Source: Saccostrea cucullata (lineage: Eukaryota). Taken from it: DNA of 61,396 bases. A model generated the notes under the pieces. That model was given only the letters and a program-made list of their open reading frames with translations, made no database searches and had not been told where the DNA came from. Both the position numbers and the translations under genes were made by a program. The stretch is from positions 1 through 61,396 of the forward strand of contig NW_026934719.1 in assembly GCF_032062105.1 (NCBI RefSeq), given 5' to 3'. Of this stretch, positions 29,935 through 57,461 are shown piece by piece. Position 1 is the first letter of the stretch. Each line of letters starts with the position of its first letter.

Positions 29935-30694
29935 ATATCTGTTCCTGTCTTTCGTATTTGAACGATTTGTAATTTTTTTAAGCATTTGACATTGTCCCTA
30001 AATATACACATTACCTACAAACCAAGTATTCAGTGTTGTGTTATTTTTTTAACAGTCTGAAAATTTCTTTTCCCAGTGGATATTGTGCCATATAAGCGGT
30101 TATCCATGAAGAATCTTTTTTTCCTGCAAAATCTCGTATTTGGAGCGCCGGCAGAGTGAACAGGGAGCAAAAATAATACATATATAACCTGGAATGACGT
30201 CATCACCAGAATGTTTTTGTGGGTGTGCACAATTTTCTAATATTGTTAAAAGATTGGACACCCTAAAATGCACCTTAAAACTGATTTTAAAAATAATATA
30301 GAGTGAAATATTTAAGTCAAGCGAAGATTTGTAGCATTGTATTAGCGTTTTTTAATTCGTAGATAACACGGTGGAACACCGACTTTGATAATTATCGCTA
30401 AAGTTGTACAGTAACTGGGTCTCAACATAAATAATGTCAGTCCTACATATATAGTTTTTGTTGACGTATACAAAGACCAATATATTGTCATTGTTTTGAT
30501 ATTTAATTTTATTTTGTCATTTTCCATACACCAGTCTGAAACTTATTTTAACCTCCGATTTCAGTAGTCAAACGTCCGGTACTTCTCTTTGACGCTTTTT
30601 GGCTTTCAAAGTCTCTTAATATTTTATAATATTCAGATTTCTTCAGAAAACACACAATATCAATTTTAATAAAAAACAAAAATACAAAAGAAAA

Positions 30695-30805
30695 AGAGTG
30701 AAAGAGATAGAGTGAGAGAGAAAGAGAAAAGAGACACAGAGAGAGAGGGCACACAGTGGGAAAGAGAGAGAGAGGCACACAGAGGGAGAGAGAGAGAGAG
30801 AGAGA
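30695..30805. repeat. (GA)n-rich microsatellite in family-B intron
   Basis: Interrupted GA run; equivalent runs sit in the same intron of B2 and B3. Confidence 0.9.
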
Positions 30806-31189
30806 TTCTTACCCCTATGCTCTTTGTCGCTCTTCTGCTTCCTCACTCATCCTCTCCACATTTTCAAAGATGTCATCCTCTGTTTCAATGCTTCGTCTGA
30901 AACATTAATGTCGAAAATATTATATTAGAAACAAAGGAACAATATGGTTTTCAAAAAAAGGTAGATAAAAGAAATCCCAGGAAATAACTACAGAGTACCA
31001 AAAAATCATTTATTGCATAAAAATCATATTAAGGTAATATTACATTCAAACAAATCATATAAATGCATAATGTACATGCATCAGCAATTTAAAGGCTATG
31101 ATTAATTGCATTCCTGTTATATGCAAAAAATACAAATAAAAATGGTTATCTCAATCTTATTCACATAACAATAGTAAGTTACGAAAACA

Positions 31190-31490
31190 GATCGGGGGGT
31201 CGTGACTTTGAATCTCGGCCAAGACTGATTTAAGACCATAAAAATGGGCAGCAACTGTTCCCTCGGCAAGTGGAAATTGCGGGTCCTTCGGATGAGACCT
31301 TAAAAACCGAGGTCCCGTGTCAAGGCTGACGTTAGCACAATAAAGATCCCTTACTGCTCAATAGCCCTGAGTGCCCAAGTTAAGGTAAAAAAAAATTGCA
31401 GCCCTTCACTGATATATTGTGACATCTCTATATACATGAGTGAATTATTCTCGAGTAGGACGTTAATTAAACATACAATTAATCAATCAA
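31190..31490 (+). mobile_element. 5'-truncated tRNA-derived SINE with V-domain-like core
   Basis: Degenerate B-box-like start, core 'ttcggatgagaccttaaaaaccgaggtcccgtgtc...taaagatccc' and (TCAA)n tail. Flanked by a near-identical 10-bp direct repeat, tacgaaaaca / tacaaaaaca. Absent from the paralogous B2 intron near 41500. Confidence 0.8.
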
Positions 31491-34400
31491 TACAAAAACA
31501 AAAAGTTTCTACATTTTCCTATAGCTTTAAATTATATAAATGAAAGCAAATTATGTAGATCTTAATATTGTCATAAAACTAAAATATAAAGTTTATAAAG
31601 TGATAAAGTATCACGTAGTATGTCTGTGATAACCACAGTGAGCTGACTTAGCAGAAATCCTGTGGATAAGGTATAAACCAAGCACGGCAACGCTGAGGGC
31701 GAGGAGGTTCATCTGCTAAAGCATGTAAGAGCAGTGACACCACAAATACAAATAAACTTAATACCTGAGATTATCAATTTTGTTTCTTTCTCAGTTTTTG
31801 TCTTGAGTTTAACACAAACAGGAACAATTTAATGCGTCATGTTCTTGAGGAGATATATTTTGCGTCAGTATAACATAGCATGCTATGACAACACAGTATG
31901 ATACATGTTGTAATAATGAATTGAGCATTAAAAAATATAAAAATGTCAGTGTAAATATGTATTAAGAAAAAAGCAAACATATAGCTATTAAGTTTTTGTT
32001 ACAGTAGATTATTTCTTAGAAACTGAACTTCTTCATATTTGTAATTGAACAAGTTTAAGATTTAAAGAATCTAGGTATGTATTTTTTGCTAATTTAATAC
32101 AAAAAAATGAATATATATACCTTAAAAGTAAACATTTTGGTCCCAGTATTTTCCCTTAAAAAAGAAAATCTCACAAATCTACAAATAATATTTCTGTAAC
32201 TGTGGTTATATAAATATCAAGATCTGAATATGCATACACGAAACTTTGTTTTTAACTGTTTTATCTTATATATAAAATTCTTGAAATTAAAAAAAACACT
32301 GTGATATTTAAACGCCATTTCTGTCAATGGTCAATTAGAATTAGAAAAACTTAAAGTACGAAAGCAATAGGTTCAGTAGAGTGAACAAGTGGGTCAGAAT
32401 AAATTTTCACATCAGAAATCTCTTATGTATGAATGTCTACAAAATAGAAAAAAATCAAAATATGCGACAAAAAGAAAGAACATCGAAGAAAAAGCCATTG
32501 ACGACTTGGACTTCGACTGAATAGAAAGACATTATAGATATTTATAAAAGGCGGATTTCAAGTTTATGTTCTATATCAAATTCATGAATTAAATTGAAAC
32601 AAATCTTGTATATGTTCAATCTGCTCTAGCAGTTAAAAATTGATACTAAAAATTACAGCTCTTCAATGGTGCTGTGCGCCATTACGAACTCCAAAACATT
32701 TGTTCTTGATGATAAAAATGATAATTGAAATGCATAGCGTTAATATTTACGGATTGAAAAAGTGCCCCTTTCCTTTACAATTTTAAAGTAGAGTTAAGTT
32801 TGTGATCAGGCATAAAAACTGCTTTGAATGCGGACTTTACCCTCACATTGACCAAGTCAAGGGCATGTAAAAAAAAAATCTGAAAACTTTCCTTTTCATG
32901 ATTGTTTTCATTGCATCCAAACGCTACAAGTTATATATACCTTCAATGTATTATCTTGCTGCTAACACTTTGCAGCGATTACTTATTTAATTTCTAACTG
33001 TTTAAAAGACGTATAAACGAGCCGTTTTTAAACTCAGTAAGTATTTTGTTTGACCAGGATTGAAAACTGAGACGTCAGAGCAATGGCGCACAAAATATGC
33101 AAATTGAGAAATTCAAACATTGATTCGGTAGTAAAACATCCAAAAAAAAAAAAAATTTCCTGGATAAGAATTTTCATGGAGAATTTTAACAGCCTGTAAA
33201 ATTTTTCATATGAAAAATCTATCAGACATAATAACAAAAATTATTATAATAATATTTCACGTTAAAGTTTAAACCTTTAGAGAATCAGGGATCAGTCAAT
33301 CAAATCAGGGTTTTTATATTAATTATCATTTGTAACATATGCGGAGTGGTTAATGCGTTCGCTCTAGAGTCGAGCTGTGAGGATATACCAGGGTCATTCA
33401 AAAAATACGTAGACAATGTCCTCCATCATCATATTATTCTTACAAAATTTTAGATCAACACATTTTTAAATGTAAAAACATTTATTTTATCAGTAAGTAA
33501 AGTTTCATTATCGTGTTAGACAATTTTAAAAGTAACATGTTTTGTCACCACGAAGCACGGTTAACAACACTGTGACGTCAAAAACAAGATTTTTTTCTTA
33601 AAATTACTCTGCCTTTTCATTACATCCACGGTTTGTTGCTTCTGAATTCATGAATCTATAGCCCTTTACACCTAGTTTGCTAACAATTGTTTGAGTACCT
33701 TACGTTAAATTGTCAATGTTTTCAAATTCTTCATTGCGTAACTCCCCGCAAAAGCGAATCGCACATCACGTTTGATGACGTTACTAACTCTTTGACACGA
33801 CTTTTTACTATAACTTGTTTTTTTCGCACACCGTTCATGGTCCGATTCCTAGTTTAAACAATAGTCATTCCCATTATAAACAAATGCATAGCACATTTTT
33901 ATCTATTTCCTGGTTTACCAAGATGTTATGATATTATGTTATTATGATATTATAAAAATAGTACAACATAATCTTTATGTCAAACTGCAATATGCAGCAT
34001 TTGAAATAAGAGTCAAAATAGAACACATGAAAAATGAAGTACAACTGCTATTCATTCCCTAACTTAAAAGCTAAACTCAAAAATGTTCCAAAATTTCAAA
34101 GCTTAGAAATGTTTTGTACGCTCAGTTATTGAACTAATTTGAAAATTAATCATTAATTAAATTAATAAAATTAAAACTAATTAATAATGCGAATGTTTTT
34201 TTTTTCGTATTAACTTTTAATATTTACTCACCAATTTTTGGTAAGAAGAAAATATCATGAGTGCAGATAAATCATTGAAATGTCTGTCTTAATTCATTGA
34301 AAAAACAGCCATTTATCTTCAAGGGCATACATTTTACTAAAACTTGTTAAAATGGGTTTAGGCTGCAGCAACAATCTAAAGTCGAAGTTTCGAGTTTGAA

Positions 34401-35993
34401 TACTGGTGTATTCAATAAAATGATGAAATACATATTTATTCCTTCACTATTGCTTCTCCAAGCAATGACAGCAGGGTCACATTGATAAGTGAGTTACCCG
34501 GTTTTCTTTCGGCATTCTCATATACTAATTTTTACTATGAAAAATGCAGTTCTGTACATGATCGATACAGCGGTCTTGAACACGATATGCGAGATCAAAA
34601 GTTGTTAACTTCAACTAGGTTCTGAATAACACGTTTGGGGATTTTTCAGTGATTTTTTTGTTCCTTTTATGATTCCCTATATATTCTATTTACCAATAGG
34701 TCGCTGTAGATCTGCAGGAAAAAAAAATAAATTATACATTGTTTGTCTTATTTATGCACGATTTACTTACATTATTCGACGAGTTAAAAATATTTGTGTT
34801 ATTTAGTAAGAGAAGGGGAAATCAGGATAAAAGTATAGGTCTTGCGTGGAATAGAACGCAAGTCCTCTGCAATACATACATGTAAGATGCACGTTGAGCT
34901 ACATGTACTCAGTATGATAAATGCTGTACAAAACCAAAACACTGCCACATTTTAACTTCTGATTCATATTGTCTTTAAATACATATATTTTTTGGTTTTG
35001 TATGGGCTTATTAATTAAAATATAATCCCCCCCTTCCCCCAAAAAGAAAAAGGAATCCGAAGGAAAAACGAATAGATGAGAGAAGAACGAAAATATAAGC
35101 TTGGGCGGGAAATTTAACACGAGGCTCCTGACTTTTACTCAGTTGTTTCATCAGGGAGCTATGGAGACTGATTTATTTACGATTCAAAGCCTTATTTAAT
35201 CTTCTAGAGCCGTAAAAGGAAAATTAATGTAGATATAGGTACTAAATGTCGGTCTAAGACTTTTTTGACGATGAAAATACACAAATGCAAATTATCACGT
35301 ACTCCTCTGACCGATATCATAAGATAACATAACGCATGTAAGTTCAGAATTTATATTCAGCAGAATATGAAATGATACCTAATAGCGGATATAATTAATA
35401 TTCGCGTATAAAACATTTAAAATTATTTAATAAAACAACAGCTTCCCGGATATCCAATAATTTTATGCATTGCATATCTATAGTAATGCATCGAAAAGCT
35501 ATAACATAAACAAAAAATGGTATTTGAAGAAAAATAGTAATAATATGCATGCAAAAATATCCAATCCTTTTTTGATCCCTAATTTAAATGTGATTTGTAA
35601 TCAACTTAAGTTGAAAAAAATATAGTTAAAGTGCTCCAATTTTCAGTAATGTTAAAAGTTACCTTTGGCAATATTCAATTCATTTTTAACATGTTCCCAG
35701 ACCATGTGGTCTATATGTTGTAAAAAGTCCTTTCATTAGTCATAGAGCAAACTCAAATTGTTCTTATTCTCAGCAAAAATATATTAAAACTTTTCGATTA
35801 AAACCTGTTTTTACATTGATTTTCACATTTTGCGTAATAAGCATGTAATACTGTACCTTCCAGATGCTGCATGTGTCATAATATAAATATAATAAACTCT
35901 GTTCATTTATGCTGACTGATATTTATTCCACTGATATCCCTATGCGAAAAGGTAATCTATATACAGTATTTGACCGCATCTCCAGGTATATAG

Positions 35994-36493
35994 ATAATAA
36001 TACATACCCTTTTCCACATCACATCCTGTATCAGTCCGAGACACCAATATCAGCCAGAGGGCTGATATTGGTCAAGGGCTGAAACAGGATGTGATGTGGA
36101 AAAGGGTTTGTTTTATTATGTTTATTACATACTAAGTAATCATGCACGGTCTTTTTTACATGTACAAATACACGGTCTACTGTCTCATACGGTTTTGGTT
36201 TGTTTCTACTTCTATTTCAAATGTACTTAATCCGTAATTTGAAAATATAATCTTTTATATGTCAATTCGATTATCCTTACATCCGAAACGCTTTAATAAA
36301 AAAATTATGTAACCTCAAACTATGTGTATGATCACAAGTACTGTTTTTGAGGTTTAAATAACTAGGGGGTGATATAGATCCGTATCAGCTCCGCAAATCC
36401 ATATTACTTCCTTGAGGGCTGATACGGCTATTGTGACGTCAGGCATATTGCATATGCAAAAATTCTGTTTGTATTACTAAGAATGTAATAAAT
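35994..36493. mobile_element. Non-autonomous element with a-a'-b-b' inverted-repeat layout (Crypton-like)
   Basis: A ~125-nt hairpin at 35994-36119 (cccttttccacatcacatcctg...aatatcagcc agag ggctgatatt...caggatgtgatgtggaaaaggg) abuts a second IR pair, 36121-36140 and 36473-36492 (18/20 match). Family assignment is from architecture only. Confidence 0.6.
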
Positions 36494-36561
36494 AGAGATA
36501 TTTCATTTTGAAAGAGAAATAAATGCATGTACACACAAGTATATCAAATGATTTCTTGTAG

Positions 36562-37489
36562 ATGAAATCGGTATTGTTTATGGTTCTCCTGTTGGTCCTC
36601 TATTGTGTGATGGAAGCAGAAACTACCACCACCACTTCTTCCACCACTACCACTTCTACCAATTCTACCAATATTACGATCCCCGTACAACGTTGTCGCT
36701 GTCGTCACCGATGGCGTTGGTGGCGTTTGCGATGGCGATGGTGTCGCTGCTATCGCTTTCTCAGAGTGAGCAAAAATATCTTGTCTCATTTTTCTCATTA
36801 TATAAAATCTCACAGTTATCTAATTTAAGTACAATGTGCCTATGTTCTCAATACAACGTTACTAAAAGGAGAGGCAAACAAATCATTTCTTAAAATTTGA
36901 AGGTGATGATAAAGAAATTAGAAATTCATTCAATTGGATAAAAAAAAAATCAGGGCAATGGTGCATTATTATTTTAAAAGGTAAAATGATTAAAAGTGAC
37001 ATGTAAATTTTGCATCTTGAAATGAAAAATATACTCGCGAAACGTAACAAATATGTTTTGAAAGGAGAAACAATTTTTTTTTTCTGTGATATGTATAGTA
37101 ATATTAAATAGATACATAGTGATACTAAAATAAGGCGGCATTCAGTTTGATCAAATCAAAATTTATATGTTGGAATAAAGGTCATTTAACTATTTTATTG
37201 AAGAATATTTCGATTTAAAAGTATTTGACCCTTAGATATATGATTTCTTTTCCTTTTTAAATATGTAAATATTTTGTTCTTATTTAAATTTTATTGAAAC
37301 AAAGAAGAGGAAAACATAATTTTTGCATCAATCTATAATAGTTTCAAATCTTTTGGCGCTATGTTTTCTTTTTCAATTTTTGTTTCTAAATTCAGAAGAA
37401 ATACATTTAAACTTAACAGTATTCATCTTTTTTGTTTGTTTATTTAGATGGACAAATTATCCGACACAGAGCTCGAATCAGCTGAATAG
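36562..37489 (+). CDS. Family-A gene A1: 81-aa secreted precursor of an Arg/Trp-rich CxC..CxC hairpin peptide (candidate antimicrobial); exons 36562-36765 and 37448-37489
   Basis: ttcttgtag|ATG, then MKSVLFMVLLLVLYCVMEA (signal-like) ETTTTTSSTTTTSTNSTNITIPVQRCRCRHRWRWWRLRWRWCRCYRFLR|gtgag ... tatttag|MDKLSDTELESAE*. AATAAA at 37540. Same exon layout as A2. Confidence 0.85.
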
Positions 37490-38323
37490 AATTCCCTATC
37501 TTCCAGAGAAATGCTTTCCTGGTTTCTCAAAGATTAAAAAATAAAAATGTTGGCTTTTTTCCATTCTGGGTTTATTTTGACTGAATCCGTATACAAATTG
37601 GTTATAAATGCAAGGGTCAAAATGCAACCCCAAAGTAGGTTATTGTTTCTGACAAGGTCATAATTGTACCACCATGGAATTTTGAAATGTGAATTTAAAA
37701 ATTAAGCATGAAAATTAAAATCAGCAGTCACATTATAGGTCGCATATGAAAGGGTTTGCACATGGATCTTGAACATGCTTCGAAGTATTGAATGGGTTGT
37801 GAGACGTCTTCAGTATACACATGTGACAGATGAAGATAACGCAATAAATAGGGAGACTTGAGTGTAGAAAGAGCGATTTAATCTAGTAAAGTCATTATAG
37901 GTGGTCCTTTTGGCATGTTACCTACAATAATCAAAACAATTCATGAATATAAAAAAAAACTAATCATACATAAAATGAGATTGTTTGTTTGAGGTCCTTG
38001 AATGGTTTCCAATCAACCGTGAGGATGACATTGACACCTATTTAGTTGTAGCCTTAGTACCACAAAAACTGCTATTAATAGAGTAGGTTATCATAATCAT
38101 TACATTAACCATCAAAATGAAAGACACCGATTGCACAATTTGAATTTTTGAGCAAATCAACTTTACTTTTCTGTTCCCTTCACTGGCGCATGAGTGAGCC
38201 GTTTAACCAACTTTTTCGGTGTGTTTACCCGTAGCCCAATATAGCTTGAGTTTGTCAAGACTTTCTCGCAAACGATCACATTTACCCATTCGAATAGTCT
38301 TCTTAAGGTTTATCTTTTACTTA

Positions 38324-57419: not shown

Positions 57420-57461
57420 ATGGACAAAATATCCGACACAGAGCTGGATTCAGCTGAATAG
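57420..57461 (+). pseudogene. Orphan terminal exon of a family-A gene (A3): MDKISDTELDSAE*
   Basis: Acceptor tatttag is intact and the exon is paralogous to 37448-37489. I found no signal/hairpin exon in 49-57 kb, and AATAAA is changed to GATAAA. Confidence 0.65.

Follow-up and report, generated by a model that had tools for sequence, protein, structure and literature searches.

The window analysed here is a stretch of 61,396 nucleotides from the rock oyster Saccostrea cucullata (contig NW_026934719.1, positions 1 to 61,396), AT-rich eukaryotic DNA with a GC content of ~0.32. It holds a small gene, A1, whose main exon on the plus strand would encode a signal peptide, a Thr/Ser tract and a strongly cationic Arg/Trp loop bracketed by two CxC motifs. 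Composition and layout suggest that A1 is probably, if by no means certainly, the precursor of a lineage-specific secreted host-defence peptide of this oyster, that is, an antimicrobial peptide (AMP).

The A1 gene

The predicted gene comprises three exons, which would be joined into a transcript for an 81-residue precursor. Its elements are the following.

35882-35888, plus strand: TATA-like box, the sole match to TATA[AT]A[AT] in 35800-35960; putative function
35910-35951, plus strand: presumed first exon, non-coding, with its beginning placed approximately; its GT donor lies at 35952 and, like the ~50 nucleotides before it, is conserved in the paralogue A3
35952-36561, plus strand: presumed intron 1, with AG immediately 5' of the ATG
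36562-36618, plus strand: predicted signal peptide M1-A19 (hydropathy 3.6 over 10 residues; paralogue alignment)
36619-36687, plus strand: Thr/Ser tract E20-V42, made of ACY repeats, with sequons at N34 and N37; the allele-like copy and A3 have two sequons as well
36688-36756, plus strand: CxC-13-CxC Arg/Trp loop Q43-R65 (C45 at 36694, C63 at 36748), in degenerate 6/9-nucleotide repeat DNA
36754-36765, plus strand: R-F-L-R, a convertase-type RxxR site that ends exactly at the splice donor; putative cleavage
36766-37447, plus strand: intron 2, phase 0, GT..AG; donor context common to A2 and A3
37448-37489, plus strand: last coding exon, for an acidic tail of 13 residues, with stop; its acceptor has the best pyrimidine tract of the interval, and each paralogue is followed by a homologous exon
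37540-37545, plus strand: AATAAA polyadenylation signal (motif match)

The main exon, 36562-36765, has an AG acceptor directly before it and a GT donor at 36766, and every element of the gene is intact (ATG, frame, both splice sites, stop and AATAAA). The TATA-like box at 35882 and the donor at 35952, conserved in A3, point to a non-coding first exon; the upstream regions of A1 and A3 align with a score of 113, compared with a maximum of 72 for shuffled sequence. Signal peptidase would cut after Ala19, as suggested by the paralogues, whose signals end in A-x-A or V-x-A, each followed by E/Q-T. We regard A1 as probably a real gene.

Two other readings of this DNA were rejected. An open reading frame on the opposite strand (36544-36813, Pro/Thr-rich) has no signal, no splice support and no counterpart in A2, and an unspliced read-through of 88 codons was discarded as the main product since the part behind the donor is not conserved in frame among the paralogues. 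Intron 1 of A1 carries a 138-nucleotide palindrome (35988-36125), possibly an insertion resembling a miniature inverted-repeat transposable element, and a 20-nucleotide inverted pair (36121-36140 and 36473-36492). Neither is found in A3, where the counterpart of the intron measures only ~105 nucleotides.

Composition and chance

The original prediction had described a segment of 25 residues with 11 Arg, 5 Trp and no acidic residue, and this is what residues 44-68 contain. Its further counts hold as well: Cys 45, 47, 61 and 63 form a CxC..CxC pattern around a loop of 13 residues, the two N-glycosylation sequons are N34 (NST) and N37 (NIT), and the tail exon encodes five D/E and one K, a net charge of -4. 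Besides Arg and Trp the segment includes one Tyr, one Phe, two Leu and four Cys, and its net charge is +11. In the best stretch of 25 residues, Arg and Trp together number 16 in the real region; 60 locally shuffled copies give 6-10, and 74 kb of unrelated loci from the same genome give 12. The architecture of an AG-ATG, a hydrophobic signal and CxC..CxC occurs twice in a 30.9-kb region, in none of 150 shuffles and never in the control loci; it is far beyond chance.

The repetitive nature of the loop DNA allows for a different origin, in which A1 would not be a gene but a degenerate microsatellite, its CGN-TGN and ACY repeats reading as Arg/Cys/Trp and Thr by accident. The loop DNA is indeed periodic at 6 and 9 nucleotides (0.57 and 0.56), and Cys/Arg runs also result when a repeat common in this genome is translated (loci L006, L007 and L009). 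However, the paralogues conserve the signal, the splice sites and both the tail and the upstream exon, even A2, in which such repeats are absent, and neither the shuffles nor the control loci reproduced the architecture or the Arg/Trp density. Paralogue comparison has largely refuted the microsatellite explanation, to which we attach hardly any probability. A codon-pattern search for the A1 loop returned the three known places only, plus chance-level matches.

Paralogues and divergence

Copies were sought in an assembly of 1.17 Gb and 23,869 contigs, whose COX1 is that of an oyster (Ostreidae, Saccostrea-like). One contig, C23659, overlaps positions 30537-37291 of the window at 92-96% identity and carries two relatives of A1, an allele-like copy (C23659:133697; protein 94% identical, flanks 96-98%), intact up to the contig end, and the paralogue A3 (C23659:117693), which is 63% identical to A1. 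Two further relatives lie in the window itself.

48140-48262, plus strand: paralogue A2, an exon of 41 codons with signal, CxC-5-CxC and RxxR; tail exon at 48950-48982
57420-57461, plus strand: orphan A1-type tail exon, 93% identical to that of A1; the window yielded no upstream exon that matches it

A2 is without the Thr tract and its loop has five residues. In a DNA alignment of A1 and A2, the second CRC, the RxxR site, the donor and the first 40 intron bases are in register. Three more A2-type copies exist in the assembly; in one copy of this type (C22316:96348-96470, L016) the second Cys has become Ser, leaving three Cys. The tail-exon pattern, with at most two mismatches, occurs at ten places in the assembly, nine of them on the four family contigs and one on a fifth, and almost nowhere in a reversed control. 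The place on the fifth contig (G000:C15010:30562-30589, L047) is an A2-type tail exon, and the 1.5 kb upstream of it hold no peptide exon to match.

The full set of four Cys is retained by A1, the allele-like copy and A3 and by most A2-type copies, around a loop that varies. The A3 loop has 12 residues and fewer Arg, and exact loop parity is thus not conserved. The RxxR site is also kept, as RFPR in the allele-like copy and RLVR or RLLR in A2-type copies, and A1 and A3 have two sequons each, partly at different places. The divergence of A1 from A3 amounts to 17-19% of sites in the coding exons and 30-33% in intron 2. Compared with its allele-like copy, A1 shows no difference in the 69 nucleotides of the loop and 3.6-3.9% in the introns; the exons are distinguished by an additional Thr codon and by amino-acid changes at four positions, none of them in the loop. 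One of the four, RFLR to RFPR, preserves RxxR.

The ACY repeat of the stalk, as we call the Thr/Ser tract, shows in-frame insertions and deletions among the copies. Together with the 6/9-nucleotide periodicity of the loop, they fit slippage of coding repeats that lengthened the loop and added the stalk to a gene that was once short and A2-like, a direction that we infer from an unrooted comparison. A1, A2 and A3 would then illustrate how a loop of 5 residues can reach 13 while the scaffold stays fixed.

Processing and charge

The conservation of RxxR at the exon end in A1, the allele-like copy and the A2-type copies makes it likely that a furin-type convertase cuts after RFLR and frees the acidic tail. 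The same logic of basic site and tail removal has been proposed for the myticalins of mussels (PMC12294457). The tract in front of the loop seems to have a different fate. It had been taken for a glycosylated pro-piece that holds the peptide inactive. However, the loop is not separated from the Thr tract by any RxxR or dibasic site, and A3 has Trp in place of R44, which makes retention of the stalk in the mature product more likely.

The anionic tail had likewise been seen as an inactivating element, a role that the charges do not favour. Its -4 stands against +11 for the loop and +10 for residues 20-68 of A1, and in A2 a tail of -3 stands against +4. The charge of the tail barely changes from A1 to A2 and so does not scale with that of the peptide. 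Judging from these predicted charges the A1 tail cannot neutralise A1 alone; it may serve in sorting or provide partial shielding in transit.

Structure of the loop

Pairing of C45 with C63 and C47 with C61 would impose the register i+j=108, which places R44 opposite Y64, R46 opposite R62, R48 opposite W60, H49 opposite R59, R50 opposite W58, W51 opposite R57 and R52 opposite L56. Since the loop is odd-numbered, the alternation of Arg and Trp flips phase at the central WW, and each face would receive the Arg of one strand and the Trp of the other. The amphipathic hairpin of the original prediction does not survive this register: Arg comes to lie opposite Trp and both faces are mixed, so the predicted arrangement is a cross-strand cation-pi ladder rather than a polar face against an apolar one. 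Cross-strand cation-pi stabilisation has been described for hairpin AMPs (PMC10608444), and capitellacin is an active two-disulfide hairpin that is non-lytic and not markedly amphipathic (PMC7761999).

Two AlphaFold runs gave a mean predicted local distance difference test (pLDDT) of 65.5 and 59.7, with strands at 43-49/59-65 and 44-49/59-64, respectively. In both models the strands are symmetric about the Cys register and R50-W58 is unstructured (pLDDT 60-66); the loop is without Gly, Asn or Pro for a tight turn. The full hairpin that had been proposed thus shrinks, in these low-confidence models, to strands near the cysteines, and the fold that they suggest is a Cys stem with an open 9-residue loop.

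Known peptide systems

Protegrins, which are porcine cathelicidins, have the spacing CxC-4-CxC, 16-18 residues, a C-terminal amide and high Arg content. The note that drew attention to A1 had spoken of the protegrin pattern. What stands of this is the CxC..CxC spacing together with the high Arg content. Unlike protegrins, A1 has a loop of 13 residues instead of 4, no amidation Gly, an acidic tail and no cathelin domain (no Pfam match, with just 23 Thr/Ser-rich residues between signal and loop), and it is an oyster gene; the resemblance is at most convergence. No protegrin-like bivalve peptide was found in the literature searched, which is thin on subscription journals.

In gomesin-like precursors a signal is followed by a cationic peptide, a basic site and an acidic C-terminal piece (PMC11678162). 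A1 shares this order, with a 4-Cys cationic peptide, with gomesin and with tachyplesin/polyphemusin, and by analogy with these two-disulfide beta-hairpin AMPs of chelicerates a C1-C4/C2-C3 ladder would be expected (PMC11678162; PMC10608444). Gomesin and tachyplesin are, however, amidated peptides of 17-18 residues with a tight turn, and the mature peptide follows directly after the signal, whereas A1 has a 13-residue loop, no amidation Gly and a 23-residue Thr/Ser stalk with two sequons. No sequence match between A1 and these peptides was found in PDB sequences or protein databases.

Among mollusc peptides, the myticalins are encoded by three exons, the first non-coding, and consist of a hypervariable Arg-rich peptide (with Trp in some), a basic site and an anionic extension; their genes are clustered, with many pseudogenes in a birth-and-death pattern (PMC12294457). 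A1 resembles the Mytilus myticalins and modiocalins in its three presumed exons, the anionic extension behind a basic site, the clustered genes and the broken copies. It differs in having four Cys, RxxR, a phase-0 intron and a tail of 13 residues, where myticalins are Cys-free and have KR/RR, a phase-1 second intron and extensions of 37-70+ residues. Mussel myticins, mytilins and MGD defensins also combine a signal, a Cys-rich cationic peptide and an anionic C-terminal extension (PMC5484132, PMC3390580), as A1 does, and the G-x-C-x-C of A2 recalls, by eye, the C-terminal hairpin of mytilins. Mature myticins and mytilins have eight Cys and a helix, in contrast to the four Cys and no helix of A1.

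Like the polychaete peptides arenicin, capitellacin and alvinellacin, A1 has a long Arg/aromatic loop and comes from a marine invertebrate, and with capitellacin it shares the lack of marked amphipathicity. Polychaete BRICHOS AMPs have the peptide at the C-terminus of the precursor; A1 has a C-terminal tail and no BRICHOS domain. The oyster AMPs Cg-Def, Cg-BigDef, Cg-Prp and Cg-BPI are, like A1, multi-copy, variable, secreted and cationic, but none is a 4-Cys loop and in Cg-Prp the anionic piece precedes the peptide (PMC3390580). By analogy, A1 may work like a two-disulfide cationic loop AMP, but it belongs to none of the protegrin, gomesin, tachyplesin and myticalin families. In reviews, molluscs contribute no hairpin AMP, and the oyster AMPs include none of the A1 type (PMC10608444, PMC3390580).

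Database searches

Protein searches with the spliced A1 model were run exon by exon, the 13-residue tail being too short as a protein query, and homologue searches with the A1 exon, the A-family alignment and the alignment of a neighbouring family, C, covered proteins of 0.55-1.75 times the query length. Among 5.8 billion proteins neither the A1 exon nor the family alignments found a credible relative; a single match in a representative library of 1.84 billion, a tandem-repeat protein, was rejected as driven by composition. Pfam and NCBIfam gave low-complexity matches below cut-off only, and A1 and A2 are without a Pfam match. Metagenome and viral contigs contained no relatives, and a genome-wide search with PF10690, the Pfam profile of the myticin/mytilin comparison, was blank, with no working control. 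Databases cover spliced oyster microgenes poorly, and the blank searches therefore leave the range of the family unfixed.

A weak likeness concerns the signal and Thr tract, which resemble Drosophila new-glue proteins (Pfam PF21827) with E=0.5 for A1 and E=5e-4 for A3, both below cut-off. In the ESM Atlas the whole A1 exon scored 0.82 to a glue-like cluster, and the loop alone retrieved nothing.

Function

The gene family, the cluster context and a precursor layout as in gomesin and myticalin, with the acidic tail encoded by a separate exon, favour host defence. In its favour also count the architecture beyond chance, the unchanged loop of the allele-like copy, the lower divergence of exons than of introns between A1 and A3, the retained Cys and the symmetric strands of both models. 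In the proposed course of events, the two sequons and the Thr/Ser tract would be glycosylated and the disulfides C45-C63 and C47-C61 would close a short antiparallel stem bearing an Arg/Trp loop of 9-13 residues. Once released, the loop (+11) could bind anionic microbial surfaces (lipopolysaccharide (LPS), teichoic acids, phospholipids) through Arg, and Trp could anchor it at the membrane interface, leading to permeabilisation or uptake. The glycosylated stalk would probably stay on and keep the peptide soluble or held in mucus. What remains of the antimicrobial precursor that had been predicted is a secreted, cationic, Cys-laddered product that carries a convertase-type site and ends in an acidic tail, with host defence as its most likely role; the amphipathic hairpin and the inactivation mechanisms are not retained.

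Several results weigh against a host-defence precursor. Its function is read solely from composition and layout, A1 has no homologue of known function in the databases searched, and the AlphaFold models are of low confidence. PDB sequence, Foldseek and VIA searches gave nothing significant (best Z 3.6); the fold searches are uninformative. Purifying selection at the protein level is undemonstrated, the proportions of nonsynonymous and synonymous differences (pN and pS) being about equal wherever countable, in few codons, and the loop identity between the two A1 alleles is merely suggestive (about P=0.07). Finally, there is damage in several sister copies: in A3 the frame is off by one base close to the end of the exon and the usual stop is missing, and some acceptors are altered.

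Such damage would suit the birth-and-death pattern of a gene cluster. It would also suit a recently silenced A1, with an intact frame but unexpressed, whose composition stems from run-away repeat slippage in a decaying paralogue. The orphan tail exon at 57420, the palindromic insertion in intron 1 and the fact that all four allele differences in the exon change the amino acid point the same way. Yet A1 retains every gene element listed above, from ATG and frame to splice sites, stop and AATAAA, the copy on C23659 is intact to the contig end despite an intron difference of ~4%, and the exon indels between the two are in frame, with Cys, two sequons and RxxR kept. We consider silencing distinctly improbable.

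A secreted A1 need not kill. It could bind polyanions or aromatic surfaces, as in the sequestration of LPS or chitin, in mucus, in shell matrix or in cement cross-linked by Arg-Trp cation-pi contacts, or it could be a receptor ligand. Cross-strand Arg-Trp pairs suit stacking or self-assembly, a glycosylated stalk is unusual among lytic peptides, A2 is only +4, and the likeness to new-glue proteins fits as well. The glue-like matches are limited to the low-complexity signal/Thr part, however, the mature part is without Gly/Tyr, a DOPA-type or an acidic mineral-binding domain, and a convertase site with an acidic tail in a cluster of diverse cationic Cys peptides agrees better with defence. A non-killing role thus seems unlikely to us.

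Going beyond host defence as such, A1 might be the extreme member of an undescribed oyster cluster of three families (A, B and C) and a mucus-tethered secreted glycopeptide, in which an uncut, N/O-glycosylated, mucin-like stalk carries an Arg/Trp loop clamped by two disulfides, loop and stalk having arisen by coding-microsatellite slippage on a fixed CxC..CxC-RxxR scaffold. We regard this detailed picture as doubtful.

On this picture of a mucus-tethered glycopeptide, A1 would give bivalves their first class of two-disulfide hairpin-type antimicrobials. Few AMP families are known from oysters (defensins, big defensins, proline-rich peptides and BPI; PMC3390580), and a 2023 review lists marine-invertebrate hairpin AMPs from polychaetes and horseshoe crabs only (PMC10608444). 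This gap would be partly filled by several families of short, cationic, Cys-laddered peptides in one cluster, absent from the protein databases searched, and A1 would be a natural counterpart, active in seawater salt, of the (RW)n motifs of designed antimicrobials.

Neighbouring families and other observations

The C family, arguably as interesting as A1, lies upstream of A3 on C23659. Its genes encode a signal and a cationic hairpin of the CxC(xC) type, whose short loop contains Gly; KKR and two short acidic exons follow. It was found at 11 places with E<0.001 on five contigs, most of them known from the match alone.

G000:C23659: places at 98833 (L030:8834-8986), 112649 (L012:2649-2810), 104215 (broken), 27324, 31053 and 89383
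Further places: C7733, C9250 (2), C14915 and C14384

C-family peptides have up to six Cys around the short Gly loop, and the member at 98833 looks like a three-disulfide ladder. One member matched the Myticin-prepro profile with E=0.002 and 18.7 bits, below the cut-off of 28.5, and the family alignment found no relative in the protein database searched. Between the A and C families the signal alone aligns (hhalign probability 6%), and common descent is not shown.

The B family consists of a signal and a 4-Cys Tyr/His-rich peptide with more exons downstream. It is present in the window at 42246-42422 (minus strand) and as a broken copy at 31712 (minus strand), and elsewhere at C22316:82351 and C23659:125983. 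It has no Pfam match; by eye, the end of its signal resembles that of mussel mytilin signals. About 7 kb from A2-type copies, a signal with a 6-Cys exon (C-CC-C-C-C) ends at a GT donor (G000:C22316:69379, L025:2380), without a match in Pfam or NCBIfam.

The first ~30.5 kb of the window (1-30536) form a tandem gene array of about eight 3.75-kb units that are 94-98% identical, and beyond it lie partial duplications of ~10 and ~20 kb. Every unit has several exons and encodes an acidic protein in which a two-exon module is duplicated; the basic/Cys-Cys C-terminus of the protein suggests membrane anchoring. Elsewhere in the assembly, mitochondrial COX1 is present twice on a contig of nuclear size, in nearly identical copies 16 kb apart and with other mitochondrial genes beside it (G000:C10137:310006-330580; L037, L038), presumably a nuclear mitochondrial DNA segment or a mis-assembly.
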